This document shows, piece by piece, positions 5,501 through 55,762 of a stretch of 64,000 bases of DNA. A model generated the notes under the pieces. That model was not told the origin of the DNA, did no database searches, and was given only the letters and a program-made list of their open reading frames with translations. Numbering within the stretch: position 1 is the stretch's first letter; every line of letters starts with the position of its first letter. This DNA comes from Monocercomonoides exilis PA203 (Eukaryota; Protista; Preaxostyla). A program made the position numbers and the translations under genes. Location: NCBI GenBank assembly GCA_001643675.2, contig LSRY02000054.1:372001-436000 (forward strand), read 5' to 3'.

Positions 5501-6483
5501 AGTCCTTGTATTTATTTTGAAAGTTGTTTGATGAAAGCATTCAAATGCAACTTTCAGTTAGAAGTGGCGCACTTATGAAAAAGTTTCCGAGATGAATGTG
5601 GCGAACTGGGCAAGAGGGATTTTGGAGAAAGAAAATAAATTGCGTTTGAGTTGGGTGATATTGAGAAGAAAGGGAAAGGAAGGGGAAGGGGCAATGGATG
5701 GAGAGCCAAGGAAAAGTATTTGTGAGAAAGGAAAATGAACATGAGAAGGAAAAAGGAAGGAAGAAAAGAGAAGAGAAGGAGAAAGTTTTGAAACAAGATG
5801 CACTACAGAGTGGTTTGAAGGAGTGAAGGGAGGGGAAATGGGGGATTCCCGTTTGAATGAAGGAAAAATCTGTTAGAGGTTTGCATTTTTTATGGGAGAT
5901 GGAAGTAAATGAGGCTGAACAACAAAGAGATTGGATGTTGGATTTGTCAGCTGTCTCGATCAGAAAGGTTATTCGCTTACGCTGAAGACTATTTGGGAAG
6001 AGGGTTTATTCAAAGTTTTTCGAGTCACAGATATCATATGAGACACTTTTTGCAATCAGAATAAGTTCTTGTGGAACAAGACTTTGTGCATTGGTTAAGA
6101 ATCAAAGAAAGTGTTTTGACAGCGATTGGAAATGTGCGCATCGAATCAGGAAAAAGTGAATGGTCTTGAATATGTTTGTATTCGTTTTAATTTTCCAGTA
6201 ATTTGTTTCTTTTGCAGTTCAGATATTTGTTGAATGAATTATAACCAAACAATATATTTTCGAATCCAAATTTTGATTGTTCCATTAAGAAAAATTCAAA
6301 AAAGCATATTGAAAGAGTTAAAAATGGATATTATTAAAAAATGAAGTCTTAATCAAAGAAAATTCATTATTCATGCTAATTTCATGAAATTAAAATTTGG
6401 AAATGTTAAAATCAGTATTTTTTGTGAAATATGATCAAAAGACATAATAGTTAATATAATTTGTGAATTTATGTTTATTAACA

Positions 6484-9400
6484 ATGAGCAGGCGTTTGCT
6501 TTTATTGATCTGTCTGCTCATCGCCAAAACATTTGAAGTGCAAGATATATTTCCACTTACCGCATTGAAAAATCAAGATTCTTGCACTGAAACACATCAA
6601 CACAATAATCGTGCTTATTCAAATAAAGGCACTCCAGAAAATAAATACTTACATTCAAAGAACGCTATTGTGACTGGAATTATGCAAAGCATATTTTCTG
6701 AAGCGAAAGGACTTCGACGGCTTGCAACAACTGCAATTTTTTCTTTTTTTGAATTCTTCAATTCTTCAGTTGGACTGAAAAATGTGGCACTTGAACATCC
6801 TTCTTCACCTTTGATGCTTGTTGCAGATAAATCAAGTGTGATGCTGGATTTGTGCATTTCCCACCAAGAATCTGAATCTCCTTTTCATTTGCAAAGTGGG
6901 TCAATCTGCATGGCGAATTTGAGTTTGACCCCCCAAATGAATGTCAACCCTTCCAGTCTTGTTTTTTCATCTGATGATTCAAATATTGCCATTTTGAGAA
7001 ATTCCATCGTTACAGATCTGGCTGTTTCATCCTCAGATTATTTCCTATTGTCTGGAAACAGTAAAAGTGAAGAGATTTCTAACTGTGCCTTCAGGAACAT
7101 GTCTGTGAAATATACCACAAATGGTGATAATTTTGTGGACCATTCATGCTTGTTGAGTTCAATGGAGAATTGCCTCATTTATTCGTGTGTGAATGCCTTT
7201 GAAGGAGGGATCTCAAGTGGATCGCTTTCTTCAGAGAAATTTGTCTGTAAAAACACAACTACTCTTTTTGGGAAAAGGGGAAAGAATGCTCTTCAGAAAA
7301 AAGAACAAATGGACACAACAGAAAGCCAATCCTTTTCATTGTGTGAATGGGAAGATTGCACAGCACCACAAGGAGGTGCTCTCTATGTTCATGACAATGA
7401 AAATGCACTTTTGACAATTGAAAATTCTTCTTTCGCAAGATGTTATGCTTCATTGACAAGAGGCGGAGGGATATATGCTTTGAAAGTCGCTGAATGCATT
7501 GTTCAGCACACAACATTTGATCAATGCTCAGCTGCAGCAACCTCAGATTATGGTGGTGGAGGAATTACAGCAGAGAGCATATACGTTCAGTTAATGGTTG
7601 AAGATTGCTCTTTTCACAGCTGTTTCTCCGGAAACGACGGAGGTGCAATTGAACTCAGTTGGTCGAAAACAGAAAAACAGAAAAAATGTATCATAAATTC
7701 CAATTTTGATAACTGTAGATGCAATGTATCATCTAGTGGAATAGGAGGTGCGATCGAACATTGGGATCCAACTGATAAAGTTATAATTTCAAATTGTCTA
7801 TTCCGCAATTGCTATTCAATGTGTGGAGGAGGCGCAATTGGCTTATTAGTTAATAGTATCAATAACGGAACATTGCTTTGTTATTGCTTTTTCCACAATA
7901 ATACATGCCAAAAAGGAGGACATGACATTGTTCTTATAGATTCAACATCAAACAACATTGATTCCACATGCTTTTCAACAAGGCAAACAGAAAACAGAGT
8001 TAGCACTCATTACTATTCTGTTATTGATAAAAGCGAATGGCTTCGAAATGATTTCGGAAAAGTCAGATTTGTCTCATCAGTGCAAACAGAACCCAATGCC
8101 ATTGATACATATTCATGCGGACTGCATAAAAACCTTCCGTGTTGCACCATCAGGCACTGCCTCACTCAGCTGATTCCAGAATTTGTAACTGATATAGAGA
8201 TACTCACAGGCACAATCACAGAGACAAAAAGTGTGGACTGCAACATCAATTCTTTCACAATATATGGACAAAGCGATTTGAGCTCAACAGTTCAAATTGA
8301 ATTAGAGGCAGCTGGATTGTCTCTTTTTTCAGTCTCAACAGGAACGTTGGCTGCCAGAGACTTTGTTCTTGTGTGTGACTGTGCATATGAAAATAATCGT
8401 GGTTCAAGACTGTTTGAGATTACTGGAACAGGAGAGATGCATATTAGCAGATTGAACATATCAACAGGAAGTGGGCAAACTTCAGAAACAGCTTTTTCAA
8501 CAGAACTGATAAATGTTCAGAATGGGGTGTTTCAGATGGAACATGTGAACTGGGCAAAGACAATCTCCACAACTTCATTGTTTTCACTTTCTTCAACAAA
8601 TGAAATTTCATTGACTCTCTCAGAATGCACCTTTGATGGGATTGAAAGAACAACAAGCGGAGCAGCAGTGATATCGTTTTCGAATGACAAAGCTAACATG
8701 AATCTGGATTCTTGTTCATTTTCAGGATGTGGAAGCACAAATTCAGAAAATGGAGGATCGATGATGCTGTGTGTTGGGAATGAGAATGAGGTGAAAGTGA
8801 AAGGCGGATCTTTTGATGGATGCTTTTGCTCAGAAACAGATGGATTTGGGGGAGGAATTCTTCTTCAATTATTGACTGATAATCCAGATTTCCTGATATC
8901 CTCTTCTTTTGGAATAAACACAGCCAAGTGGGGGAATAATATCTTCGTCATTTCACCAGATTTGGAAGCAATTGCCAATCCTCAAAAGATTTCGTGTGTT
9001 TCAGCTTCTTTAGATACTTTTGACAAAGTGAGAGGATATGACAATGGAAACACAAGTGTGGCCATTCCTCTGTGTATCTATCTCCTTCCCGATCCAACAG
9101 AAATATATGTGAGTAATACTGAGGCATCCGATCACTCACATTGTGGAATTGCTCAATTCCCTTGTTTGACAATAAAGCACTCACTCGCAAGGCAAACAGG
9201 AGAAAAGAAAATTATTGTAAGTGGAATGATTTTGGTGAGCGAAGAAATGACATTTGCAGAGAGTGGGTGTGTTATCGAAGGAAGCGACGAGAATAGCGGG
9301 TGGTCTGTGAATGCCGATGGCGATATATCAAATAACCCGATGCTATGTGCACATGGAGATGCAGCATTGTCAAATCTTATCTTTTCTCTCCCTCCTTCTC

Positions 9401-12400
9401 TGTCGACTTGCTTCAGTTTCCTTTCATCGGACAGATTTTTACGGATTGTCTCATGCTCTCTTTCGCTTCAAGATCCATCGGCTGATCTTAATCTGCTGTT
9501 CTTATTTGTTGAATCAGGAACCTTAACAATCGATACATTCTCTGCTTTTCCATTTAATATAAATGGAAGACCGTTTATTTCGTTATCAGGAAGCAGCACA
9601 GAAGCCAAATTGAAAAATGTTTATTTGATTGAGATTGAAACAAGTTGTACATCAGGATTATTTGAAGTGGTTGAAAAGGCTTCAATTCAAATGAGTGATT
9701 GTGAAATTTCTTCGATTGCTCCATCAGAAGGAATAACATCCACTCGTTTGATCTCTTCCACAAGCGCCAAGAAAATAAAAATTATTCGAACTGATATTTC
9801 AAACTTTGCAGTCAAAGACCAAAATGGAGGAGCAATCGAGTGCACTGTTGAAAGTGGTTGCTCTTTTGTCTTTGAAGAAGGAAGCATGAGCTCGTGCAAA
9901 AGTGAGGGAGGGAGTGGAGGAGGGTTGTGGGTTCAGATGAAAAGTGGATCATCTCTCAGCATTGGCAATGTGACAGAATCCCTTTCAAACAATGATAATG
10001 GAAATGAAGAAGAGAAAAAAGTGTGCTTTTCTCATTGTTCAGCAACTGCAAATGTTGATGGGAGGAAAGGATTGGGAGGAGGGATATATTTGTATTTGGA
10101 TGCTGGAGCATCTGATTTTATATTGAAGAGCGTGAGATTTGATGGATGTTCAGGAAGGAAAGGGAAAGACTTGTTTTTGGATGCAAATGATCTGAGGGCT
10201 GTGACAAACACAGCAACAATCTGCTTCAATGTTGATGTGAATGACCTTCACAAGTTGAACGGGTTTGAGCGCTCAACGGCAAATGAAGAATTCGTGATAC
10301 CACTTGTTGCGTATTTTTGGAGCAACTTCACATCCCCTTGCCATGTTGGAGGGCAGAAGGCACATGATTTCAGTGGGTGTGGATTTGAGCAGGTTCCGTG
10401 TTGCACAATTACTCAGGCAGCAGATTTGAGGTTTTCTGGAAAAAACAAGTCGATAAAACTGCATTCTCCATTTTCATTTGTGGAAGAACTGAAGATAGAT
10501 TCAAATGAATGGAGCGTGACTGGAGAAGGAAATTCCTCAAATTATGAGATTGAAGCAGAAATTTCTGGTTCACAAAGTGGAGTATTCAAGACACACTGAC
10601 CAACAACCTTTGATGAGGTTGTGCTTTCTGTTGCAGAAAGAATAGGATCTTATGAAAGCATATTCCATTGCATTTCCAGTCAATTGACAATTCAGAGCTG
10701 TGGAATTGTTGCCTCGGAAAACGAATTGCGAGTTTCCTTTGTGAAAGTGGAAGGGGGCGAGGTTGTGATAAGCAATGCGTTTGGGAATGCAATCGGATGG
10801 CAGGTGAGTGCGATTATTGTTGATGGGGGAAGTGGAGGTTTCTCTTCAGTTGAAATCAGTGAAAGCAACTTTTCCGGAAACAGCGAGCAAAATGGATGTT
10901 TGATTGAATGCAGAAGCATAATGAGTTTGAACATCACTAAATGTGAAATGAAGACAATAGAAAGAACAATTGGAAATGGAGGATGCATAAACGTTGACAA
11001 CAGCAATGATGAAAATACGAACACACAAATAAATATTGAAGAATGTTATTTTGAGGAATGCTCTGTACTGGCTGATAGAAGCAGAGGAGGGGCTATCAAT
11101 GCTCAGCTGAAAGGAAATACGCATTTGGATATTATTTCTGGCACATTCACAGGATGCACAGCGCCAACTGGAGAAGAAGGGAAAACTGGGTTTGGTGGAG
11201 GGATGACACTGAAGCTGATTGATGAGTATTCTTCATTTGTGATCTCATCCCCTGTTTTTGATTCTGATAAGCCAAATACTGCAAGATATGGAAATGATCT
11301 TTTTGTTGAGTCATTCAACTTGACAAAGAGCATCACAAATGACTCACTTCCATTTGTATCTGAGCATTTAAATGATATTTCATTGAATTCCATGAGAGGG
11401 TTTGATGGGAATGACACAACGAATGCTATTCCATTTATCTATTTCTGGCGAACATTTGGCTCAGAGATAGTTGTTAGTGATGATGGAAAAGATGTTTGCA
11501 CTTGTGGATTCTCAGATTATCCTTGTTTGTCAATTGATTATTCATTAACAAAACTGCCAGAAGGAAATGAAAGGAATATAAACATCATTGGAAAAGGAAT
11601 TATTCAAAAATGTATTGATCTCAGCGGAGTTTCTATTAAATCAGATGATGAAGAAATGTGCTCTTTGGAATGTCACTCTTCTCTTGAAGGAGCAGAAGGA
11701 GCTGCAATGAAGATTCAGGGCATTTCCAAATTCGAACTGATTCGCTTTGTTATTCCATCTTCATTTACAAGTGGAGTCAATTATTTGATGCATGTTGACT
11801 CAAGCGATGGATCATTGACTGTGAAGGACTGTTCATTCACAAAAAATGAAGAAAGTGGAGAAGAAATAATTAATTTTGGGCTGATCAAAGCAGATGGAGG
11901 AACTGTTCAATTGGAGTTTGTGTCAATGCAATCACTCAGCTTTTCAAAAGATGTTATTTCTGTTTTGTCAACAACAACATTGAATGTGAAAAACCTGACG
12001 ATGAAGAATGTTGAGCTGGAAGGAGCAAGCGGATTGAGGATTTCAAAGAGTTCAAAAAGAAAGAATAATGAAGAGGAACAAGATGTTCTTATTGAGTGGA
12101 GCATTTTCGAAGAAGTCACCCAGAACACAACAGATGATATACCAATCATTCGAAATATCAATGATAATCCATTGAAAATTGTGATTCGAAACACAACGAT
12201 GAAGAAGTGTGGAGGGTTGAAGTGTGGAAAAGGAGGAGGGATGTTTTGTGTGTTGAATGAGGGAGGAAGCTTTGATTGCTCATTTTGCACAATTTCTGAG
12301 TGCTTCTGCTCCACCACAGGAAGAGGTGGGTGGCTGTTTCTGGAGTGCACCTCGACAGCCGAGCAGCCTCTGAATTTTGTGCTGTTGAATATCACATTCA

Positions 12401-15216
12401 GAGACAACTCTGCATTGAGAGGAAGAGATGTGTATGTTCGATGCCACTCAATTGAAACACAAATAGTTGATGAGCAATTCCTTTTGGATTTCAGATTGCC
12501 ATTTGTGAAGGATCTGGCGATATGGGGATGCACAACCGACTCGTTTGTGGGGGAAGAAGATCTTCTGCTGAGGGTTGTGAAATACCAGAGCGAGACGATA
12601 TTTGTGTCTTCTGTTGCAGACAATCACACAGACAGCAAGCAATGTGGAGAGTTCAGTATGCCTTGTCAATCGCTGAATATTGGAATTCAACACATTATTC
12701 CATCTCTGTACTCTCAGCTGTTGATATCAGAAGAGACAATAATCAATGGAGAATGTGAAGCGAAGGATGTGATTATCCGCTCACTTCAATCTCCCTCAAC
12801 TGCTTTGTTTCATTTGAACTCAACAATTACAGGTGATTCTGGGAATCTAATCACAACCACAGAGAATATTCGAATTGAAAGATTGAAATTCAATTTTGGG
12901 AAATCGTTTTCATATTCAGGCAATTCAATTATTCATGAAACAAGCGGACAACTTTCTCTTTCATCTGTTGATTTTTCTTCTGTTGGGGAATCAGAAAACG
13001 TTGAATCTGTTGTTCTCAATTCAACGTTGTTGAGCATCGAAAATGGAATTCTTCATGTTGATAACTGCTCGATAACAAAGCTTTCATTCAAGAAATCTTC
13101 GTTTCTATTAAATGGAGATGAGATAAATATAACGAATGTTAAACTGGAACAAATCGAATCAACAACAGATATATTTGTGATTGGAAAATGTGGAAGTGTT
13201 GTATTCAATGGAATTGATGCTTATGGGGTGAAGTTGTCTGGAGGTTGTATAACTTCTATTAAAGAAAAAACTTCGGGAGCAATTTCTCTTGTTGATTCAT
13301 CATTCAACAACTGTTCGAGAAATTCAGAAGGAGCTTCAGTTTTCTCTGCTTCTTCATCATCCGCTCAAATAGTTCTTTCCAACTGTTCTTGTTCCAACTG
13401 TTTCTCTTTGTCTGATAAAGGAAGCATCATGGAATTTGACAACATGAAAGATGCTCATATGAATATGTGTGAGCTTGAAGGAATTCTGACAAAAGAAAGT
13501 AAAAGAGAAAGAAATAATGAATCCAGAGAAATATGTGAATGGAATGGATCGCTTGTCCACGTGGAAAACTCCAATCTTGACTCAAAAGAAATAAAGATAG
13601 AGAATTCGTCAAAGGGAGGAATATCAATGAGAAGAGGAAATGTGAATATTGAGATGGGAATGTTTGCAAACAACAATCCTTTCATTGAAAAATATCCATC
13701 ACTCCGAAGAAACATCATTTGCTCAGATTCTGCTTCATTGGCCATTTCCAGCTTGAAAGGTGGAGATGGATTGAAAGATAATTCTTCTCTTTGGATTCTG
13801 AATGATGGATGCACGCTTGGAGGGATAGCAGGAGAAAGATCATCTCCTTTTTTCATTCCCAAACTGGAAGATGTTTTTGTGAATGAAAATGGAAGCAACA
13901 TTTATATCAAATTCAAGGGATCTCTTTTTGTTCCATGTGACTTGTCATTCAGATTGATATTCAAAACAGGGGATGTGGAGTTGGTTGAGACATATCATTT
14001 TGACGAAGACAGTTTTGTATCAGAAACTGAGGTGGTTGGGGAAATTTTATCAGAAAATATTTCGAAGATTGCAGATGAAACGGAGGTATCAGTGATGATT
14101 CTGTTTGGTGGATCCAACAAACCATCATCAACAAATTCATTCATACTGAAGAACAAAAGTGAATCCGAACCAAAAAGAGATGAAATAATATCAAAAGGAG
14201 AGGAAAAAATTGAATGGAGCTTATTTGCCTTTATTGGGTGCATTATTGTTCTGGTGATTTTTGTTGCTTTGTTTGTTGCGGTTCTTGTGCTTCTGCGAAA
14301 GAAACTGAGGGAAGCCGAAAAGAAAGTTGAGAAAGAGAGATTAGAAAATGAGCAGATAATGGAAAAGATGGAGAGAAGAAGAAGGGAAAACAATGGAGGG
14401 AACTTTGAGATGAGTGAAATGCCATCAACATTGCTGGAAGGGATGACAAGCCAAATTCCGCTTCTCATTGACAACGATGAAGATCTTCCAGAGCCTCCTA
14501 CAATGAGCAATAAAGAAATTCTGAATGAAAATGATCTTCCAGATTTGGAATCTCCATTGCCATTTTCTGGGGAAGCTTCTACTTCTGGAACTTCACAATC
14601 GAGTTCATTCAATGTGATATCAGCAAAGAAGCCATTTCGAGAGAAAGAGAAAAAGAACATCAAAACATTACACTCAGTGATTCATTCAGTTCAGGGTAAT
14701 TTCACATTGGGAACAAGAGCGATGGATGTTGTTGATGGAAAAGAAGTGGTTTTTGTTGTTGCAGAGCTGTTTGAGCATTTGATTTTCGTTGGAGACGAAA
14801 GAGTGGAAATGATGGAGAGGCAGCTGTGCCCATATTCAATCTTCGTTGAGGAAGGAAATGAAGAAATATACGTGTTGACAGAGGAATTGGAGGATGAGAA
14901 GCAGAAGGAAGAAATGAAGCGATGGAAGGCACCTGAAACTGGAGTTGGAGACGAGGAAATAGAAAAAGCAGTTGTTTTCACACTTGGACTGATTCTTCAT
15001 GAAATGACAACAGGGGAAGTGCCTTTTAGCGAGTGCATTGCTGAAGAAGCGCAAGATATGATAAGGGATGGAGTGCGACCCCTGACAGAAGGAATCGAAG
15101 GAGAAGATCTGATTAAGCTGATAGAGAAGATGTGGGCAGATAAGCCAAACGAAAGACCCACATTGGTGGAAGTGATTGGCTTGCTGAAAGATCCGGAGGA
15201 AGAATCCGAATGCTAA
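6484..15216 (+). CDS. Receptor A: ~2,900-codon type-I membrane protein (signal peptide, Cys-rich GGA[I/L]-repeat probable beta-helix ectodomain, TM, degenerate kinase C-lobe) with one in-frame TGA at 10597-10599
   Basis: ORFs 6463-10599 and 10621-15216 share a frame. ATG 6484 MSRRLLLLICLLIAK. Repeats GGALYV/GGGIY/GGAIE/GGAIN and CG...PC.TI. TM WSLFAFIGCIIVLVIFVALFVAVLVLL (~14215-14295). Tail RWKAPE...VFTLGLILHEMTTGEVPF...RP without GxGxxG, HRD or DFG. Confidence 0.85.
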
Positions 15217-30812: not shown

Positions 30813-33800
30813 TCAACTGCTTTCTCTTGTTTGTGTTTCGCTTTCAGATCCAGAATGCAGCTTCACAATAACCCCGCTTCGCTCAACGTATTCTGACTCA
30901 CAAACATCCGAACCATCGCAGTATGCAATTGCATCTGACACCGTCGCCATCGTGTATCCAGACGGCAACCACCCAACCAGATACCGCTTCACCTGCACAA
31001 GCGATGCTCTCCTTTCTGGATCTCCATCCAACCCATTTTTCACCGCCTCACACATCTCTGATTCCCATATGCTCTCCAGCCCTGGTCTCTCCCCATTCAC
31101 TATCTTCTGCCCTGCCACTTCTGCCTCATACTCTCCAAATGGGATTTGAAGGGTCAAGCACTCCCACAACATCATCCCAATCGAAAACACCACTGTCTTC
31201 TTCGTTGCTCCCATCTTCTTATTGATCAACAGTTCTGGTGCCTTCCATCTCAAGCACTCTTTTTTGAAGCTATCTTCATCCTCAAACGCTGATGAGGGCA
31301 GAGAGTCATCATCATCATCGCTGGCAGATGTTACAACAGTTGATGATGAAATGGATGAGGAATCTGAATCATCATCTGACAATAAGTCCGAATGCATCAC
31401 AATGCAGATCACCATGTGTTCGGAGAACAATACAATGTGGGGACTGAGATTGGCAAGTGACTGAAGAGGATTGTCCATTTCATCAAATGAATGAAGGGCG
31501 AGATTAGCTACCCAGAACAGGATCTGGGCAGCTGTTTGTTCTCTTTCCTTCAATGAACCAATTGGCATCTCTTTTGTCTTATTCCTTCCATGAAGCAGCA
31601 TGAACAGTGAATCCCTCAGATCCACGATCAGCTTTTCATGTGGCGAAGAGCATGCCATTGCATCCACAAGATTCGACATGGATGAGGTGGTTGGGCACAG
31701 ACTCTCTGATCGAACAAATGTTGAATCTGAATCAGTTGTTGAAGTTGATGAGATGGATGGTGAGGGAGTTCGCTTTCTTGTCTCTTCTTCCTTCTCATCC
31801 ACTTTCTCCAGCATCCATTCTGGGATCTTGTCTGAATCTTTTCCTAATATGTATTCAGTGGAGCCACTCTCAGATAGAAGATGCTCAGACGACTCCGAAT
31901 GTCCCAAACTTTTCTCATACACCTTCTTCTTTATCCTCTCTTCATTCTTCTTCTCTGCCTCTTTCTCTGCTCTCCTCCATCGCTCCTCTGGTGACATCTC
32001 CATCGTCACCATCTCAAATGCCTTCGGATCCTTTCTGATGTTGTCATTCACAATCTCTCTCAGATCCTTCGCTTCATTCTTTACCTTTCTCCATCTGACT
32101 GCAAGAATAACAGAAACAATCAGAACAATCAACAATATCACAACAAGGATGATAACAATAAGCAACCAATAAGATTTCCCTTCTTTTCCTCCTTCAACAA
32201 TCTTTTCATCTCCTTTGAACTTTGATTCTGTTTTGTTTTTCACAATCTGTGGGCTTGTTGCTGCCAATTGCTTTCCAAACAATATCATCACTGACACCTC
32301 TGTTTCATCTGCAATCGTTGAAATGTTTTCTGATGGAATTGTTCCAATAACTTCCGTTTCTGATATGAAACTGTCTTCGTCAAATGGATATGTCTCAACC
32401 AACTCGACATCCCCTGTTTTGAATATCAATCTGAATGACAAGTCACATGGCACAAAAAGAGATCCCTTGAATTTCACAACAACATTGCATCCATTTTCAT
32501 TCACAGAAACTTCTTCCAGTCTGGGAATGAAGAAAGGAGATGATCTTTCTGCGGCTATCCCTCTCAAATCACATCCATCATTCAAAATCCAAAGAGAAGA
32601 ATTATCTTTCAATCCATCCCCTCCCTTCAAGCTGGTGATGGTTAATGAAGCAGAATCTGAGCAAATGATATTTCGACGAAGAGAGGGATATTTTTCTATG
32701 AAAGGATTGTTGTTCATAAATTCACCTTTCTCAATCGTCACATTGCCAGCAGACAAAGATAATCCACCCGATGAAGAATCCTCAATCTTAATTTCTTTTG
32801 CCTGAAGATTGGAATTTTCCACGTGGACAAGCGATCCACTCCATTCACATATTTCTCTGAAATCTTTATTTCTTTCTCTTTCACTTTCTTCTGTAAGAAT
32901 TCCTTCAAGCTCACACATACGCATCGAAACGTCAGTCATATTGTCAAGTTCCATGATGCTTCCTTTATCAGACAAAGAGAAACAGTTTGAACAAGAACAG
33001 TTTGAAAGAACTATTTGAGCGGATGATGAAGATGCTGAGAAAACTGACGCTCCTTCTGAATTTTTAGAGCAGTTATTGAATGATGAATCAACAAGAGCAA
33101 TTGCTCCCGAAGTTTTTTCGTTCATAGAAATGATGCAACCTTCAGACAACTTCACCCCATTAGCAGATATTCCATTCAGCACAACACTTCCACATTTTCC
33201 AACCTCAAATATATCTGTTATTGAATCAATATTTTCCAGTTTCACATTCGAAATATTTATCTCACCTCCATTTAGCAGAAATGAGGGTCTCTTGAATGAA
33301 ATGAACGAAACTGAATAGTTGTCAACATGAAGAATTCCATTTTCGATGTTCAACAATGTTGAATTGAGAACAACAGATTCCATTCTTTCTGATATCAAAA
33401 TCGAAGAAAAGTCAACAGATGAAAGAGAAAGTTGTCCGCTTGTTTCGTGTATAATTGAATTGCCTGAATATGAAAATGACTGTCCAATGTTGAATTTCAA
33501 TCCTTCAATCCTAACTTTCTCTGATGAAGTGATAATACTCCCTTTGTTGGTTATTGTTGAGTTCAAAAATACCAAAGCAGCTGAGGGAGATTGAAGTGAG
33601 CGGATAATCACATCCTTCGCTTCGCATTCTCCGACAATAACCGTCTCCTTTGAGATCAACAGCTGTGAGTACAGAGATGGAATAATGTGTTGAATTCCAA
33701 TATTCAGCGATTGACAAGGCATACTGAACTCTCCACATTGCTTGCTGTCTGTGTGATTGTCTGCAACAGAAGACACAAATATCGTCTCGCTCTGGTATTT

Positions 33801-36800
33801 CACAACCCTCAGCAGAAGATCTTCTTCCTCCACAAACGAATCTGTTGTGCAGCCCCATATAGCCAATTCCTTCACAAATGGTGCTCTGAAATCCAAAAGG
33901 AATTGCTCTTCAACAACTTGTGTCTCGATTGAGTGGCATCGGATATACACATCTCTCCCTCTGAACGCAGCGTTGTCTTTGAACGTGATGTTGGATAACA
34001 CAAAATTCAGCGGCTGTTCAGCTGTCGAGGTGCACTCCAGAAACAGCCACCCACCTCTTCCTGTGGTGGAGCAGAAGCACTCAGAAATCGTGCAAAACGA
34101 GCAATCAAACTTTCCTCCCTCATTCAACACACAAAACATCCCTCCTCCTTTTTCACACCTCGTTCCTCCGCACTTCTTCATCGTTGTGTTTCGAATCACA
34201 ATTTTCAATGGATTATCATTTTCATTTCGAATGATTGGTATATCATTGGTTGTGTTCTGACTCACTTCTTCAAATAAACTCCACTCAATAAGAACATCTT
34301 GTTCCTCTTCATTGTTCTTTCTTTTTGAACTCTTTGAAATCCTCAATCCGCTTGCTCCTTCCAGCTCAACATTTTTCATTGTCAGGTTTTTCACATTCAA
34401 TATCGTTGCTGACAAAACAGAAATAACATCTTTTGAAAAGCTGAGCGATTGCATTGTCACAAACTCCAATTGAACAGTTCCTCCATCTGCTTTGATCAGC
34501 CCGTACTCAATTATTTCCTCTTCTCCATTATTTTCTTCATTTTTTGTGAATGAGCAATCTTTCAGAGTCAACAATCCATCACTTGATCCAACATACATCA
34601 AATAATTGACTCCACTTCTGAAGGATGATGGAATCACAAACCGAATCAGTTCGAAATTGGTAATTCCAGAAATCTTCATTGCTGCTCCTTCTGCTCCTTC
34701 AAGTGATGAGAGACATTCCAATGAGCACATGCTGCTCTCATCAGATTTCATTGTTATTCCACTCACATCAACGTATTTCTGAAGAATCGCTTTTTCAATG
34801 ATGTTAATATTCTTTTCATTTCCCTCTGGCAATCGATCCAATGAATAATCAATTGACAAACAAGGATAATCCGAGAATCCGCAAGCTCCAATATCTTTTC
34901 CTTCACCCCCAACAAATAACTCTGAGCCAAGTGAGAGCCAAAAATACACCAGTGGAATTGCATTCGTTGTGTCATTTCCGTCAAAGCCTCTCATTGAATT
35001 CAATGAAATATCTGCCAGATGCCCAGAAACAAATGGAAGTGAGTCATTTGTGATGCTCTTCATCAAGTCTGGCGATTCAACAAACAGGTCATTTCCAAAT
35101 GTCGCAGCATTAGGTTTTTCAGAATTGAAAACAGGAGATGAGATCGCAAATGAAGAATCATCATCAATCAGCTTCAGTGCCATTCCTCCACCAAACCCAA
35201 TCTTTTCTTCTTCAGCTGGTGCAGTGCATCCTGTGAATGTGCATGAAATAACATTCATTTGAATGTTCCCTTTCAACTGAGCGTCAATGGCCCCTCCTCT
35301 GCTTCCATCAGCCATCACAGAGCATTCCTCAAAATCACATTCTTCAATATTTATTTCTCCATTTGTATTTTCATCTTTGCTGTTGTCAATGTTGATGCAG
35401 CCTCCGCTTCCACCTTCTCTTTCTATTTTTGTGTAATAGCTTTTTGTCATGTTCAACCAGGGAGTGCTCGTTAACTCTGTATTTGTTCCACTTCCAGACA
35501 ATGAGATTAACGAATTTCCACTCAAATCAATTGATGAAGCTGAGAATTTGTCGATTATCAGGATTCCAGACTCAATAGATAAGAATAGAAATGTCAATTC
35601 TGATGATGGATTTTGAAGAGAAACAGAACAGTGAGACAGAGTCAACGAAGAAGACAAACAAGAAATAAAAGTGGAGTGTGACGAAAGAGAAGATGGAAGA
35701 GAGAAGATGAGCTTTGACAAGACTGTTTCAATATTTGTGGTTATCATCGCAGCATCAGATTCAATTTCAATATCGGAGACGATCCATCCACTTTGACCAT
35801 CGTTTCCTTTGATTTCATGCTTCTGTCCAGCAAAGGCCATTTCATCGCTCATCGCAATCATTTCGCTCACAACAACTTTCTTTTCTCCTGTTTGCCTTGT
35901 GAGGGAGTGCTTTATTGTCAAACAAGGGAATTGAGCAATTCCACAATGTGAGTGATCGGATGCCTCACTATTACTCACATATATTTCTTCTGGTGTGGGG
36001 AGGAGATATATGCACAGAGGAATAGAGACACTTGTGTTTCCGTTGTCGTATCCCCTCACCTTGTCAGCAGTATTTGATGATGCCGTAACGCATGTGATTT
36101 TTTCTGATTTTGCTGTTTCTTCCAAATCTGGTGAAATGACGAAGATATTATTCCCCCACTTGGCTGTGTTTGTTCCGAATTCGGAGGATATCTGGAAATT
36201 GGGGTTTGCATTCAATAGCTGGAGAAGGATTCCTCCCCCAAATCCATCTGTTTCTGAGCAAAAGCATCCATCAAAAGATCCGCCTTTCACTTTCACCTCA
36301 TTCTCATTCCCAACGCACAGCATCATCGATCCTCCATTTTCTGAATTTGTGCTTCCGCATCCTAAAAATGAACAAGAATCCAGATTAATGTTTGCCTTAC
36401 CATTGAAAAACGACATTACAGCTGCTCCGCTGGTTGTTCTCTCAATCCCATCAAAATCACATTCAGAAAGTGTCAATGAAATCTCATTTGTCGAAGAAAG
36501 TGAAAACAATGAAGTTGTGGAGATTGTCTTTGCCCAGTTCACATTTTCCATTTGAAAAATCCCATTCTGAACATTTATCAATTCCGTTGAAAAAGCTGTT
36601 ACTGAAGCTTGCCCACTTTCTGTTGATATGTTCAATCTGCTTATATGCATCTCTCCTGTTCCAGTAATCTCAAATAACCTTGAACCACGATTATTTTCAT
36701 GTGCCGAGTCATGCACAAGAACAAAGTCCCCGACAGATAATGTTCCTGTTGAGACTGAAAAAAGAGACAATTCAGCTGCCTCTAATTCAATTTGAACTGT

Positions 36801-38598
36801 TGAGCTCAAATCGCTTTGTCCATATATTGTGAAAGAATTGATGTTGCAGCCCACATATTTTGTTTCGATAATTGTTCCTGTGAGTATCTCTATATCAGTA
36901 ACAAATTCTGGAATCAGCTGTGTGAAGCAGCGGCTGATGGTGCAGCATGGATGGCTTTCATCCCGTCCGCATGCATATGTGTCAATGGCATTGGGTTCTG
37001 TTTGCACCGAGGAGACAAATCTGACTTTTCCGAAATCATTTCGAAGCCATTCGCTTTTATCAATAACAGAATAGTAATGAGTGCTAACTCTGTTTTCTGT
37101 TTGCCTTGTTGAAAAGCATGTGGAATCAATGTTGTTTGATGTTGAATCTATAAGAACAATATCATGCCCACCTTTTTTGCATGTATTGTTGTGAAAGAAA
37201 CAATAATAAAACAAAATTCCATAATTGTTTGTATTTATATATTGGTAAACAGCGCCTGCTCCACACATTGAATAGCAATTGCAGAATTGGCAGTTTGAAA
37301 TAACAACTATTTCTGCAGGATTCCAATGTTCGATCGCACCTCCTGCACCATTTGAAGAGTCATTGCATCGACAGTAATCAAAATGCGAATTAATAATACA
37401 TTTTTTCTGTTTTTCTGTTTTCGACCAACTGAGTTCAATTGCACCTCCGTCGTTTCCGGAGAAACAGCTGTGAAAAGAGCAATCATCAACAATTGGCTGA
37501 ATATTTATATTTTCTATCGTTATTGCACCACCACCATAATCTGGGGTTGCTGCTGCCGAACACTGGACGAATGTTGTGTGCAGCACAATGCAGACAGCGA
37601 TATTCAAAGCAAATATCCCTCCGCCCCTTGTCAAGGAAGCGTTGCATCTTGCGAAAGAAGAATTTTCAATTGTCAAAATTGCATTTTCATTGTCATGAAC
37701 ATAAAGAGCACCTCCTTGTGGTGCTGTGCAATCTTCCCATTCACACAATGAAAAGGATTGGCTTTCTGTTGTGTCCATTTGTTCTTTTTTCTGAAGAGCA
37801 TTCTTTCCCCTTTTCCCAAAAAGAGTAGTTGTGTTTTTACAGACAAATTTCTCTGAAGAAAGCGATCCACTTGAGATCCCTCCTTCAAAGGCATTCACAC
37901 ACGAATAAATGAGGCAATTCTCCATTGAACTCAACAAGCATGAATGGTCCACAAAATTATCACCATTTGTGGTATATTTCACAGACATGTTCCTGAAGGC
38001 ACAGTTAGAAATCTCTTCACTTTCACTGTTTCCAGACAATAGGAAATAGTCTGAGGATGAAACAGCCAGATTTGAAATGATTGAATTTCTCAAAGAGGCA
38101 ATATTTGAATCATCAGATGAAAAAACAAGACTGGAAGGGTTGACATTCATTTGGGGGGTCAAACTCAAATTCGCCATGCAGATTGACCCACTTTGCAAAA
38201 GAAAAGGAGATTCCGATTTTTGGTGGGAAATGCACAAATCCAGCATCACACTTGATTTATCTGCCATAAGCATCAAAGGTGAAGAAGAATGTTCAAATGC
38301 CATATTTTTCAGTACAACTGTAGAATTGAAGAATCCCAAAAATGTGTTTTTCACTGTAGATATTCCTGACTGCAATGTTTTCTTTCCTGAAAATGAACTC
38401 TGCCGGAACAAATAATCATTGTCCACTTTCGATTGAAATTGTGCATCATTTGAGTTTCCTTCACCATTATAAACACAAATAATGAAAAATACAAAAATAC
38501 AAAAGAATACCTTTGTTCTCCAATGTGGCTGTTCCAGAAAGATCTCGTGCTTCAAATGCCTTTCCAAGAATCAAACATGCAAAAAGGAGCAAATGCAT
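30813..38598 (-). CDS. Receptor B: ~2,580-aa paralogue of receptor A with a different TM and pseudokinase tail; 2 exons
   Basis: Exon 1 38598-38511 gives signal peptide MHLLLFACLILGKAFEARD; GT-AG intron 38510-38459; exon 2 is in frame with the 2584-aa ORF. TM YWLLIVIILVVILLIVLIVSVILAV; tail LRWKAPE...VFSIGMMLWECLTLQIPF...GERP. Confidence 0.9.
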
Positions 38599-41248: not shown

Positions 41249-44200
41249 TAGATACAATGCAGATTGAATCAAATTATTCAAATTGAAAAAATAATTTAAA
41301 ATAGTGGGGGTTATTTAAAATAACCCCTGTTTATTTGAATTGACTTGCTTATTTTTAAAATCTTCATCCTATTTTGAATTGAATGTTCAAAACATGAAAA
41401 TAGATAACATTAAATGATTTGCATAAAAGATTAATGTGAAATACTGAAGTTTTTTTGATTTTCTTTTAGAAAAAATTTTGATCTTTCAATAATCAACTTC
41501 GAAAAAATAGAATATTTCGATAATTCGTTTAAAATGCTTTTCCAACTTATGTTATTGAAAACGTGAGTTACATAATGCAAGTATATATTGTTTAAACAAT
41601 TAAAAATTCATTTTTCCCAATATACAAATCATAAAAGCTTTTTCAAATTTTTAGTTTATTTCTTCGCAATTGAAAGTTGTTTCTTATAATTGTTTCAACA
41701 TTAGCAACTTCAATGTGATGCCTATCTATTCCCTTTGGATTACTCTGCTTTTCCCGTTTCAAACAACAGCTATTTTCAAACAATATTGTTTTTCATTTTT
41801 CACCTTGCTGAAAAACAATGTTTAAAATCATTAACAAGAAATATATAAAACACTGAATATTTATAGGTATATATGGTTTTTTTTTCAAGATTTCGTTTTT
41901 TATGAAGAACATTTTATATTATTTCAAATTTTTCTTTTTCGATATTTATCTTCTAATTTTGCAAATTACACAATTTTTTTGCAGTTCCAAATGCTATCAA
42001 CATTTTGCCTTTGGATATACCACATTTATAACACACTCTATCCTCAAGATTTCTCACAAACGAAATTTCTATTTCAATTGTGGCAAACATTTATTCTCTC
42101 GTGTCAGCATCAACAGCTTTCGCTTCCAGCACGTTCAAAACACCATCAACTGTTATATTGTCTTTTTTGTCAACAGCTCCGACACTTCTCTCTCTGCCTT
42201 CAATGCTTCTTTTCTCCACCAAACACGCTCTTCATCAAATGCTCCTGTTGAACACATTGGAAATGAAACTAATAAAAAGAAACCTGGAAGACTGATTTCG
42301 TTTGACGTGAACAGCCATCGATTCGAGTGGTGAGAATGGAATGATCCAAATGGTGGAAGCGATTGAGGTGGAGCACATAAAGTCAACTGCGAAAATGCAA
42401 ATCTCACAGTCATATCGTGTTCTTTTCACAATAGTTCATCCAATGGTGAAGGAGAAGCGTCATACAGCTTGCATTTATTTCATGGTAACAACGAAATCCA
42501 ATCACACAAATTGTTCAGCTGCTGGTGGAGGAGCGAATTGCCTTGGAGGAATGCAGACAAATTCTATTCGGCTGCTAATAGAAAACAGAGTTGAAAGTTG
42601 TTCAATAACAAGTTGGGGTGGAACTGGTTGGGAAATAGTGCTTGACAACATGCCATCAGATGCAAAATTTTTGTTCACCAAATGCAAGTGTATTGCAAAT
42701 ACTGGCGGTGATGCGGCAGGAGCAATCACATCTAATTATCCTCCAGCAGTAACTTCTCTTTAATATTTACCACAAAAGTACCAGTTCATTAATAACAAAT
42801 TGATAAATTCATCATCTTCATGGGGAGGAGCCGGGCTATGTTACATAAACACCTTCACTTGGATGAGCGGGTTCAAATTCATCACATTCTGCTTTTTCGA
42901 TGGCAACACTGCCACTAATGGCAGAGGAAATGATGTGTTCTTTTACGGAAGTGATATCACCAAATCTCCTTTCCAGCAATGCTGTTCAACAACCCAAGCT
43001 AAAAGAGTGTGGAATGCAGGAACTGCTGATAACACTGTGTACAACAGTTGGCTTCCAATCATCAACCAGAACAAAATCGTGTCAAATAATGGGACAAACA
43101 CAGATCTCTGCGGAATCACACAACTCAGTCCATGTGAAACAATAGAATATGCTCTTGTTCGCATGGCATATCCCCAAGACGCCTCACTCACCCTCCTCTC
43201 CTCAACATTTGTTCCAACTCAAACACTCACTTTCAGTGTGGCTGACACTAAAATCACTGGAAATGGCACAACTGCCACCACCATCGCCTCCAGTGGCATT
43301 CCCCAACCACAAAACTCATATTCGCAGTCATCGCAGTCATCATCATCATATTCATCATATTCATCAATATCAACATCTTCTTCACCAGATCCATCTTCCA
43401 CTTTTTCCCTCTTCCAACAGACTCAGGGCTCCCTCACGGTCTCTGCCCTCGCCCTCACCCACAACTCCTCAAACCAAATAACTCCCATCCTCTTCCACCT
43501 CTCCCAAAGCTCCCCTTCCCTCAACCTCAACACAACCACCATCACCGGAACAACCTCCATAACAATAAAAACTCCCCTCTTCTTCCTCACTGCTGGCTCC
43601 CTCGCCCTCAACCACACAGCAATCACCAGTCTCGCCCTCAGCAGCCAAAGCATCTTCCACCTCACCTCCCTCACCGCTCCCCTCACCCTCAACTCCTCCA
43701 TCACCCACATCACTTCCACTGCAATCCCCGCCAGCTGTGTCCTCTCCTCTGCCACCTCCCCTGCCCTCTCCCTCTCCCTCGCCAACTGCACCATGACCAA
43801 CATCAACTCAGAACAGTTCAGCCAACAGACTGCCACAGATGGCGGATGCATCTCATTCGCCTCATCTACATCTGCCAGCACATTTTCTGTGAATGACACC
43901 AAATTCACTGTATGTAATATGAGCGATGAAGAAAAGTGTGTATTTGAAATATATGAGTTGATAAATAAAAAGAAAGAGAACGTGGGATGCTTCTAAAAAC
44001 AGGTGCAAAGGTGAAAAGAAGAAAATGTACTTCTTTTTAAAGAAGTTGGCATTGGAGATTTTATGGGGATGTGGTATGAAAATGAAGAGATAAATGATAA
44101 CGAAAATAAAAAAGATGCGTGAAGTAATAAGAAAGAGAGAGGCTTAATTTAAGAAAAAGAGAAAGATCATTTGGAAATTATGAGATTACGGCAAAAGAGA

Positions 44201-45669: not shown

Positions 45670-46620
45670 TCCACCCATTTTATTATCGGGAACAATAATT
45701 TCTGACTCTCCAGAGCACTTTCAGAAAAAAATAAATAATAGAAAATTATAAGTATAAAATTAAATACTGTTCCTGAAAATATTTTTTATTTTTTCAATTT
45801 TAGTGAAAAGATCTGGTATTCTTTGTTTTATTATTGAGATCAAAGATTTGCTAATATTTCAACAAGCTTTTTGTTTTGAATGTTCTGAGTTATATCATTG
45901 TTGAAAAACTTCATTTGTTTTTTTTTTGTTTTCGGTTAATTTTTGATATTGAACACTTCGTTTTTCAATTATTTTTATAATTTCGTGATTTTTTGTTAAA
46001 ATATGAAAAAGCGGTATCGTTTGTGATAATCATGGTTTTTCACGTTGAAGAATAAATGTCATACTGATTGAAAGGTGCATCACGAGAATTTTGAAATGAA
46101 AGAATGCAATTTGAAGCAAATGAAACAAAAAAACACAAATACAAGTTTTTTTGATAATAATCACAATCGTTGATATTTTTTAAAGTATTTTTTTCATATT
46201 ATTTTCTTTGTTTGTCGACAATTTTTATATTTTTGCTTTCAAATTCAACAAAAAATCTTATTCACTTTATTGCAAACTTCAATTTGTTGATATATTGCGA
46301 AACGCAAAAAATAATTAAAAAACGAAGTGTTCAATATCAAAAATTAACAAATAACAAAAATAACATGAAGTTTAACAACAATAGCAATACTCAGAACATT
46401 CAAAACAAAAAGCTTGTGCAAATATGAGCATATCTTTGATCTCAATAATAAAACAAAGAACACCAGATCTTTTCACTAAAATTGAAAAAATAAAAAATAT
46501 TTTCAGAATAAATAATATAAATATTTTGAAGGTTTCCTGCCATTCATTTTTTTCAAAAAGTGCTCTGGCGATACAGAAATTTTAGGTAACGTTAATAGAA
46601 ATAAAAAAAAAAAGTGGGCG
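45670..46620. mobile_element. Foldback/MITE-like element with ~310-bp inverted arms and a ~300-bp spacer
   Basis: 45774-45852 (TGAAAATATTTTTTATTTTTTCAATTTTAGTGAAAAGATCTGG...) is the near-exact reverse complement of 46428-46505; similarity spans ~45670-45990 against ~46292-46620. Confidence 0.8.
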
Positions 46621-46749: not shown

Positions 46750-48080
46750 CATTTGAAGCACAAATGTGCCGATGCAGTCTGTGAATGGTTTTCTTTAACG
46801 ACATCCTGAATTGATATTAGTGGAAGCCATTGATCAAAAATTGGTGAATTTAGCAATTGAGCATTGATGACAATTTTTCATCAGAAATATGTCGAGTGTT
46901 CTCAATGTCTTCATCATCTTCCTCTTCTTTCCTAACATTTGAAATCAATATTTTCTTTGAAGAAGTCACTGATGGTGAAAAGGGGTGTGTTGAAAGTGAT
47001 GAAATAATGCCAGCTTTCGATAACGCTCTTTGCTTGTTTTTTCAACACTGTTCATCTCGACAGCATCAGCCTCCAGCAAAAGTTCAGCAAAAAATAAATA
47101 ATAATCCTCTGACAACATTGAACAAATGAAGCGAATGAACCTTTGATAGAATCATCTTTCAAATAAGAGAAGGAATTGATGGGACACTTTATGAATTTCA
47201 AAGAAACTTGTGTGCTTTTTTTCAATCAACATATTTCCATGATCCCTCAAACTCCTCTGTTTCTGATCTCACAAAAGGCAGTTCTTCAACTATCATTTTC
47301 TTCAAACTTCTTTCTTGGTATTTTTTTGTCACAACAAAAACCATAAAGCAGACTTATTCACCAATCTTGAAGGATTGCAATGTTCAGGAGGAAACTAGAG
47401 GATTTCTTTAGTTTAATCCAAATACAATCCTTTCTTGGTTTTATTATTTGATATTAATGAAATCTTATCAAAAAGAAGTGCAATTTAAATATCAAACATA
47501 TTATTATCAAATGGGACCAAAAAGTCAGCAAAACAATTTCACCCTTTTTTGTGCTTCATAGGTTTCATCTTTTTAAAAAAGGCAACTTTCGGAAAAACAG
47601 ACACTCAAATGGAAAACAATTCAGTAAAATATATTTATTTTCAAAAATTGATAGTAGCTGCAAATTTCAACTAGCAGCTTTTCATTCTTCCCTTCTTTCT
47701 TTAACTCTCAGTTGATAACAATGCATTGAATTCGATTGCTTGAAAAAGAATTATGGTGACATCTTCCCAGTTTATCTTTCAGCACTTTGCAATATTCCAT
47801 CTGGCTCAGAAAAAGAAGAGAATTTCAAAAGGAAATTTTCATTCATGAAATCATTTCATTGATTCCATTGAGTATTTCAACAATGAAAACTGAAAACTGT
47901 TCTTCGGCATTCATTTTATCAAAGAATATTTTCATTTCTATGTCATATATTTTTGTTCATTTTCAGAACCTTTTTCATGCATTGCAAGCAACATTGAAAA
48001 TAAAAGTTACAAGGTGAAATAACAGAGGAAAGATCTCATTTTTATTAAAAAAATTTTATCACTGCATTTCGTTTATGAAA
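46750..48080 (-). pseudogene. Heavily decayed paralogue of the 2989-4463 family
   Basis: Minus-strand fragments KEGKNEKLLVEICSYY and KVAF..KDETYEAQKRV match RERNEKLWVDLCECH and KVALRKEKDKENQKEV. Many stops. Confidence 0.7.
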
Positions 48081-48450
48081 TTTGTTTTGAAGTCATTTTT
48101 TCCTTATTTGTTTGCTCTTAAAAAAGAAAGAAAATCTTATTGAGATTATGTATGTCGTAATTGATAGTTTATTTGGAAAATCAATTTCAAGTTATGTGTA
48201 TGTCATTTTATAACAACTTTTTTCATTTTTAATAATGATCGGAAGACCAATTTTTTTATTGAATTCAAAGATATGTTGAATATTTTTTAAAAACAAAATG
48301 ACAACGATTATCCATTCTTTTGTTGTATTTTTCTTTTTCATTTGCAGTTGAAAGAAAACAACAACAAATGAAAAACAATTTAAGTTATTGTTATGATTTA
48401 TTTTTTCAAATGTTTCACCAAAAATATTTATATTTCGAAAAAAAATTCAT

Positions 48451-54839: not shown

Positions 54840-55130
54840 AATAAAACTGATTATCTTGGAGTGAACCTGTCTCTCTACGTTCTATCAAGAAATTTCATTT
54901 CTGCAATCATTCAATTGATTCTGTCAAGCATTTCTGTGGTGAAAACTTTAAACACTTCATATGCATCCATCTCTTCAACATTTTTATTAATTTCCCAAAT
55001 CATACGTTTTGTTCATTTTCATAACCTTTTTCAAGCGTTGCAATCAACTCTGAAAAAAGGAATTAAAGAAAATAATCAGGTGAATGTTTCATTTCTTTCA
55101 ATTGAATCATTTGCAGCTCTCCATTCAATT
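54840..55130 (-). pseudogene. 5' fragment of another 2989-4463 family paralogue
   Basis: FSELIATLEKGYENEQ..EINKNVEEMDAYEVFKVFTTEMLDRIN matches FSELFDKL..ELNEAMEEMNEEELKTVFTKEMFDKIF; DNA resembles 47830-48060. Confidence 0.7.
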
Positions 55131-55762
55131 TAACTTCTGAAGAAGTCATTTTTTCCAAAAAAGTTTGCTCTGAAAAGAAAACAATTAATCTTTTTTGAAA
55201 TATTGTGCCACTTTTCCTGATAGTTGATTTGGAATAAAGGATTTTGTGTGATTTGGACACTGTTAAATAAATTATAATTCCATTTTTTTGTTTTGACTGT
55301 AAATTAATTTTTTGAATGAATTCAAAGAATTATTGTTAGTTTTTTTTCAAAATTGTCTGGAAAAGGAATCAACATTATTTATTCGAATTATTCAAAGAGA
55401 AGTTTCTGTTAATGAAAAACAACAACAAATGAATAACAAATTTTGATAGAGATGCTTCTATTTTTTGGAATGTTATTTATTTGTTTTCTTAAAAGTTGCA
55501 GTGTATTTTTCACATTCTGAAAAAATACAAAAAATACGCGTCTATATATATCAATAAAAAGATTTTGGTGATATTTTGTGTTCATAGTATTATTAACCGT
55601 GTGATATGTTTTGAATAAAGTGAGAATATCAATGATAAAAACAGTTAAACAAATTGAAAAAGTGATAAAAATAAAGCATGACAAAAATATTCGAATGAAT
55701 ATACACATGGAGTGACAAGAATAATTGCTGTTCCAAAAGATAAATGAAAGATCCATTTTTAA

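Follow-up and report, generated by a model that had tools for sequence, protein, structure and literature searches.

The var genes of Plasmodium falciparum, a giant surface-protein family, undergo mitotic ectopic recombination in which short in-frame exchanges produce chimeric genes; in these genes the more variable blocks lie between conserved ones, and exchange is favoured between copies that lie close together. In large palindromes, such as those of the human Y chromosome, gene conversion proceeds from arm to arm. Here we describe a locus that bears comparison with both. It comprises two very large receptor genes of Monocercomonoides exilis PA203, referred to as A and B, which lie tail-to-tail with about 16 kb between them in a 64,000-nucleotide (nt) stretch of contig LSRY02000054.1 (positions 372,001 to 436,000; hereafter the window), and which form a mosaic of identical and strongly diverged blocks. 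We consider the best explanation, and a very probable one, to be ectopic short-tract gene conversion between linked paralogues, a passive, proximity-dependent process that needs no dedicated variation machine. Coordinates are window positions throughout, and comparisons of A with its paralogues use A coordinates.

Over the kilobase in which the alternation was first noticed, A 7067-8076 (forward strand) and B 38020-37010 (reverse strand) are 90.9% identical overall by pairwise alignment, and the identity is distributed in blocks (Table 1). The initial annotation had described a sharp alternation, and alignment together with exact-string checks reproduced its block edges to the base, each identical block being found once, on the opposite strand, by exact-string search. 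Beyond its first 319 nt, tract I contains two differences (7383 and 7408) followed by 34 identical nt up to 7442; over this tract the number of synonymous substitutions per synonymous site (dS) is 0.013, the next-best paralogue stands at 88% and the depth of short-read unitigs is about twofold (~2x). The same annotation had noted synonymous changes in the diverged blocks, and these are indeed plentiful: block II has 17 synonymous differences, a dS of 0.67 and a ratio of nonsynonymous to synonymous rates (dN/dS) of 0.25, and block IV has 24, with a dS of 0.89 and a dN/dS of 0.19. Tract III covers exactly one beta-helix coil of 30 residues (381-410), and a paralogue on another contig (L003, contig C64) matches it at 98.9%. 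GG motifs recur about every 30 residues, and peptide comparison bears out the earlier statement that the coil with the D-GGAI motif (DGGAIELSW) is the same in A and B while the neighbouring GG coils differ. The mosaic reaches beyond the reported kilobase, with significant tracts on both sides of it and in a membrane-proximal module; outside the tracts, the ectodomains of A and B are 75-93% identical.

Table 1. Receptor genes A and B and the blocks compared between them (window coordinates; ORF, open reading frame).
Feature	Position	Strand	Remarks
Receptor gene A	6484..15216	+	ORFs 6463-10599 and 10621-15216, one frame
Receptor gene B (MONOS_10983)	30813..38567	-	single 2,584-codon ORF
Partner stretch in B	37010..38020	-	stretch compared with A in the initial annotation
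Tract I (putative conversion tract)	7064..7442	+	7064-7382 = B 38023-37705, 319 nt identical
Diverged block II	7443..7602	+	35 differences in 159 nt, 78% to B
Tract III (putative conversion tract)	7603..7691	+	89 nt identical to B 37484-37396
Diverged block IV	7692..7926	+	53 differences in 234 nt, 77% to B
Tract V (putative conversion tract)	7927..8075	+	149 nt identical to B 37160-37012
Further identical tract	6888..6990	+	103 nt = B 38199-38097
Further identical tract	8238..8314	+	77 nt = B 36849-36773
Further identical tract	8773..8858	+	86 nt = B 36314-36229
Identical tract, membrane-proximal module	12552..12713	+	162 nt = B 33828-33667
Extra 1.36-kb beta-helix module of A	9594..10955	+	absent from B and 12 other close paralogues

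Recombination was assessed by permutation, by approximately unbiased (AU) tests and by comparison of all pairs, with 40 paralogues aligned over 4 kb, 14 full-length genes over about 10 kb, and the pairs on contigs C70 and C80 over 4 kb. Chance is excluded as the source of the identical runs. Over 5,985 aligned columns A and B are 85.9% identical, and they contain identical runs of 319, 162, 149, 103, 89, 86 and 77 nt, compared with a null expectation for the longest run of ~48 nt and a maximum of 111 nt in 5,000 shuffles; when family-polymorphic sites are considered, the longest observed run spans 162 sites, while no run under the null exceeds 51 (p<1e-4). A uniform dS along the alignment, which the initial annotation had named as evidence that would speak against conversion, was not what we found: the identical blocks have a dS of 0-0.03, the diverged ones a dS of 0.67-0.89. 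In the alignment of 40 paralogues over this kilobase, A and B are 99.5-100% identical in the identical blocks with the next gene at 88-90%, and in the diverged blocks their 77% identity equals the family background. The maximum-likelihood trees conflict in the corresponding way. The identical blocks give an A+B clade (100/99), and the diverged blocks join A with L004 (99/97) and B with L003 (99/95), the latter within a B+L003+L005+L006 clade (100/99), A+B being rejected there (delta log likelihood 45, p-AU 0.02). The proposal that segments were converted or ectopically recombined between family members is thus supported by non-uniform dS and by switching tree topology, as well as by a third-locus match to B and by junctions seen in short reads, both of which are taken up below.

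Similar mosaics are found across the family. The 14 full-length genes form 91 pairs, and in 51 of these one or more tracts exceed in length everything that 300 shuffles produced; tracts occur in all modules and in the cytoplasmic tails, A and B sharing the most (seven), and non-coding upstream DNA has them as well. Exchange depends on linkage. Identical runs of at least 60 nt are present in 82% of 38 same-contig pairs compared with 5% of 742 other pairs, the mean amount being 317 nt versus 5 nt (permutation p 2e-4), and the shared amount falls with distance, from 2,750 nt at 8.6 kb through 1,526 nt at 12.9 kb and 886 nt at 30 kb (A and B) to 460 nt at 32 kb. At the near end of this range L005 and L006, inverted and 8.6 kb apart, are essentially identical over 4 kb. 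The head-to-head genes L012 and L019, 12.9 kb apart, show 100% identity over non-coding upstream DNA and on to ~7400, fall below 80% at 7450-7950 and are patchy beyond. Three genes on contig C80 (L021, L036 and L038, at 660761, 478935 and 628954) form a three-way mosaic in which L021 and L038 have a common 5' part, L036 and L038 a common 7450-7950 and L021 and L036 a common stretch at ~8000-8500. As a separate observation, another head-to-head inverted pair, L043 and L044 (G000:C52:135500-145499 and 150500-160499), is 100% identical over the aligned columns of two 10-kb stretches, which points either to a palindrome whose identity has been maintained or to a duplication of very recent date.

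The positions of the tract ends follow a pattern too. When 23 unique ends from 30 pairs were compared with random differing sites, 15 of the 23 fell in 7300-7479, a zone that holds 15% of the background (binomial 6e-8, for ends that are not independent of one another). This zone lies between a conserved stretch, with a family mean identity of 80-86%, and the least homogenised stretch, with 62-73%.

Ectopic conversion would account for these observations in the following manner. The ectodomains of A and B would repeatedly swap segments of ~80-320 nt through non-allelic homologous recombination, probably as gene conversion in the course of double-strand-break repair. The 100% blocks would then represent the newest transfers, the windows of 90-97% older ones, and the 77% blocks old sequence that was never converted. 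Tracts would end where local divergence rises, at ~7300-7480 on the 5' border of the least homogenised part of the distal beta-helix, the simplest reading being that heteroduplex extension halts where identity drops. Passive, proximity-bound conversion of this kind would act family-wide, with chimeric receptors as its by-product. M. exilis encodes the homologous-recombination pathway and is without non-homologous end joining (NHEJ) (PMC6759080), so that repair from a nearby paralogue would be the expected fate of a break; we infer this mechanism of repair, as we do the direction of any single event and any benefit that the chimeras might bring.

Several points weigh against this explanation. 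The data come from one clonal strain in which no event was caught happening, and contigs hide rare variants; the read support described below is confined to the junctions of A. Local duplication also raises the likeness of linked genes, and part of the linkage effect is therefore ancestry rather than conversion. Finally, several linked pairs share the tract border at ~7300-7480 and each gene keeps its own 7450-7950 sequence; a purely passive model directly predicts neither the shared border nor the gene-specific stretch, and requires the further assumption that heteroduplex extension halts where identity falls. These two features leave a modest chance that selection maintains diversity in the 7450-7950 part of the distal beta-helix. 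Taken a step further, the inverted pairs, with conserved flanks around a gene-unique ~7450-7950 segment, might constitute a standing generator of chimeric binding surfaces, in which every break in a receptor gene must be repaired from a paralogue for want of NHEJ, and selection keeps neighbours different in this segment while the rest is homogenised. We regard this as doubtful; if true, a non-pathogenic, amitochondriate commensal would possess a diversity engine of the var kind.

A second alternative reverses the history, making A and B recent duplicates, formerly identical throughout the ectodomain, into which the 77% blocks were pasted later from third paralogues, and here the structure of the two genes is informative. 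Gene A encodes a signal peptide, five beta-helix modules, a transmembrane (TM) helix and a kinase-like tail; gene B encodes four such modules, likewise with a TM helix and a kinase-like tail, and its product is a 100% match to an uncharacterized M. exilis protein (P0001). The two are collinear over A 6745-9593 and B 38342-35491 (86.8%) and again over A 10956-14108 and B 35427-32275 (85.8%). Outside 6745-14108 no similarity between A and B was seen, the 5' ends, TM helices and cytoplasmic tails being unrelated, and the 5' end and tail of each gene come from separate family lineages, those of A resembling L045/MONOS_4902 and those of B resembling L042-L044. The extra module of A has its nearest relatives, at 77-84% (best 84%), in a five-module subfamily on other contigs. 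Given this module and the L045-like ends, A is a chimera of subfamilies, combining a B-like N-terminal part, a middle module of the five-module type and an L045/MONOS_4902-like 5' end and tail. Ends of different lineages are hardly what recent duplicates should show, nor is an ectodomain that outside the tracts reaches just 75-93% identity.

The search for donors bears on the same alternative. The initial annotation had looked to exact donors at a third locus for the diverged blocks, and this holds in part for B: its blocks II-IV are closest to L003, at 90-92% and locally 99%, with block II at 90.6% to L003 and block IV at 89-90% to L003, L005 and L006, and a whole-genome search with the B block returned relatives at 92% and 88-89%. 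It does not hold for A, for which no close donor was found in the 82-Mb assembly for either block II (best 85%) or block IV (best 81%); likewise no near-identical donor was found there for the diverged blocks of L012 and L019 (best 81% and 73%). The match of B to L003, and the identity of L012 and L019 over 1.8 kb including non-coding upstream DNA, which resembles a young duplication, are what one would expect if diverged blocks were late insertions. Against this, a dS of 0.7-0.9 would demand very old or lost donors, and together with the missing donors for A and the unrelated ends it makes the reversed history unlikely.

With conversion between A and B as the preferred reading, the relatives of the tracts also hint at direction. 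Tract III is 98.9% identical to L003, with which the flanking B sequence groups, which suggests that it passed from B to A. The opposite direction, from A to B, is suggested by tract I, which like the 5' end and tail of A resembles L045. Exchange thus looks bidirectional, as far as direction may be judged from such resemblances.

Gene A carries a single in-frame TGA at 10597-10599, inside the extra module. Paralogous proteins (e.g. P0017, P0023) continue uninterrupted across this position, so that A is either a very recent pseudogene or has a residual assembly base error there. RNA unitigs cover A-only sequence and suggest that A is transcribed, with the reservation that RNA libraries can contain DNA. 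In a side observation on the extra module, 10 of its 16 best matches are held by five inverted pairs, 10-15 kb apart, on contigs C20, C32, C50, C10 and C51, the two members of a pair having equal scores; genes of this receptor family seem often to be arranged as inverted pairs.

The initial annotation went further and proposed that the membrane-distal domain is diversified by the swapping of repeat units, in a system comparable to those of VSG, vlsE or VLR. A dedicated programmed system of this type (or of the msp2 type) would copy archived cassettes in order to vary the distal binding surface. Some of our observations would suit it: the distal beta-helix holds the mosaic, with one tract matching exactly one coil, the 7450-7950 region moves, since B and L003, as well as L036 and L038, share it while their flanks differ, and tract ends cluster at its 5' border. 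The remainder of the evidence does not. The suggestion that block edges follow the GG coils is right for 7603-7691 and fails family-wide, tract ends being enriched neither at the GG motif (p 0.20) nor at the F..C turn (p 0.38); coil-by-coil swapping was accordingly rejected, with tract III as its lone match. No archive of silent cassettes was seen among the 40 relatives inspected, all of which are gene bodies with their own flanks. A 398-amino-acid ORF near B (42800-43996, best match P0113) was considered as a silent donor for A and B and was rejected as too distant, with 25-29% amino acid identity to the family ectodomain. Diversifying selection on the variable stretch was also rejected, dN/dS at 7443-7926 being 0.13-0.35 in 12 pairs and no higher than in the flanks. 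The diverged blocks in A, L012 and L019 lack a near-identical donor in the assembly, exchange depends on linkage, and the junction unitigs are the same in sequencing runs of 2016 and 2022. Nor are the tracts confined to the membrane-distal domain, for they occur also in other ectodomain modules, in cytoplasmic tails and in upstream DNA. It is the identical blocks, not the diverged ones, that are recently moved DNA, and the immediate effect of exchange is therefore homogenising as much as diversifying. Taken together, these results leave a programmed system very improbable.

Canu, Nanopolish and ten rounds of Pilon were used to build the assembly from nanopore reads. Its authors caution that polishing works less well in multi-copy regions (PMC8767320), so that an artefact had to be considered, as the initial annotation had also recognised. 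We therefore placed Logan 31-mer unitigs on A 6700-8500, from DNA runs of 2016 and 2022 (one sample) and from two RNA runs of another study. The DNA unitigs stop at 7602 and resume at 7692, precisely the edges of the 89-nt block common to A, B and, nearly, L003, and RNA unitigs bridge both of these edges. The A-only unitigs (7413-7602, 7692-7803 and 7807-7910) have depths of 93-100, and those of shared blocks 201-218, equivalent to two copies. All four A junctions are spanned by unitigs with zero mismatches: 7442/7443 by X3 7377-7602, 7602/7603 by X6 7460-7649, 7691/7692 by X5 7603-7803 and X6 7654-7910, and 7926/7927 by X3 7881-7970 (a DNA unitig of the 2016 run). No variant at or above 10% appeared in the blocks of A, as judged from unitigs and contigs, which drop rare variants. 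The idea that Canu correction or Pilon copied sequence between paralogues and so created false identical blocks could appeal to the authors' warning and to a base of A, 8375, that conflicts with every unitig placed there, but the 2016 run is older than the nanopore assembly, the shared blocks have twice the depth of the A-only blocks, unitigs break exactly at block edges, junctions recur without mismatch in DNA and RNA runs, and many other gene pairs have like mosaics, so that this artefact is largely refuted for A and can be set aside as highly improbable.

As to position 8375 itself, the assembly has G and all unitigs (one DNA run, two RNA runs) have A, and none of the 13 other full-length paralogues compared is similar enough to account for these unitigs; the G is probably an error that polishing failed to remove from a multi-copy region.

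By sequence, A and B belong to a family named protein tyrosine kinases or TKL, the largest in the M. exilis genome with 332 genes, which overlaps 'unclassified repeats' (PMC6759080, PMC8767320). The distal domain of B has matches in more than 118 M. exilis proteins, with E values down to 0, and beyond M. exilis there is only a weak match in Streblomastix. Members are giant type-I membrane proteins in which a signal peptide is followed by four or five modules of right-handed parallel beta-helix, a single TM helix and a kinase-like tail that is truncated. In the tails PF07714 is matched in its C-lobe only, at profile positions 158-258 of 258 (158-255 in A), which makes them probably pseudokinases; no HRD or DFG motif was seen in the tails of A and B. 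Over the N-terminal 1,378 residues no Pfam family was found at E<=0.01. Chlamydial Pmp repeats were considered and rejected, since there is no Pfam Pmp match and the GGAI-like motif is a resemblance only. The AlphaFold (AF2) model of A residues 90-600 (pLDDT 84, pTM 0.87) consists of regular stacked three-strand coils. An exhaustive structural search with it gave Z 24.1 (root-mean-square deviation 3.4 A over 320 residues) to the phage tailspike 5w6f, with NosD and AlgE4 at Z 23-24. The top rows are without exception right-handed parallel beta-helices, and they include bacterial adhesins; Foldseek against the PDB gave weak rows only. According to the predicted model, then, the distal ectodomain is a right-handed parallel beta-helix.

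Two other repeats were observed in the window, both outside the receptor genes: an inverted repeat of ~300 nt (82%; 45678-45976 versus 46600-46307, arms ~330 nt apart) and a direct repeat of ~600 nt (66%; 47834-48414 versus 54890-55474, 7 kb apart). They may be transposon ends or remnants.

A literature search on gene conversion in Monocercomonoides returned nothing relevant, and we believe this to be a clear, previously unpublished case (no paper was found) in which a very large receptor family of a protist undergoes ectopic gene conversion of the ordinary kind. It reveals no new mechanism. Its interest lies rather in a clean, quantifiable distance dependence of ectopic conversion in an organism whose breaks are mended through homologous recombination, and in what it says of the family, which has until now gone only under the name of 'tyrosine kinases' or been seen as unclassified repeats that disturb repeat masking (PMC8767320, PMC6759080), and which the present analysis describes as beta-helix receptors evolving reticulately, with exchange of 80-320-nt tracts between linked copies. 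Single gene trees of this family are unreliable, the assembly needs paralogue-aware polishing, and receptor repertoires can change through recombination.

Lastly, we return to the known systems. Mosaic VSG of Trypanosoma brucei (PMC11383311), vlsE of Borrelia and VLR of lampreys resemble the present family in that segmental copying builds mosaic surface proteins, and to this extent the comparison drawn in the initial annotation is apt. What characterises those systems is an expression site or a germline gene that is incomplete, together with silent donor cassettes and directed, frequent, one-way transfer. None of this was found here, A and B being complete as genomic genes, unlike the incomplete germline gene of the lamprey VLR; with no archive, no close donor for A, no sign of diversifying selection, joints that do not follow repeat units and the same junction unitigs in the DNA runs of 2016 and 2022, the likeness stops at the level of segmental copying. 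Conversion tracts are also present among surface-protein paralogues of another gut protist, Entamoeba, in its Gal/GalNAc lectin genes (PMC3125142). The Entamoeba family is small; in M. exilis there are more than 100-300 genes, many in inverted pairs, with sharing that decays measurably with distance. From var the M. exilis family differs in that we have no evidence of mutually exclusive expression, subtelomeric clustering or immune selection, that the organism is a commensal, that the ectodomain is a beta-helix and not DBL/CIDR, and that dN/dS is well below 1. It agrees with var in being a large family of giant surface proteins with in-frame exchange between paralogues, conserved flanks and a proximity effect. 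With Y palindromes, finally, it shares inverted pairs, here 9-32 kb apart, that would keep identical stretches by intrachromosomal conversion. A and B, given their different ends, are not arms of one duplication, and homogenisation in this family is only partial, with sequence from third genes interspersed, unlike that of the Y palindromes; the family nevertheless displays a palindrome-like range, from L043 and L044, which are 100% identical, through L012 and L019, which are mostly so, to the patchy identity of A and B.

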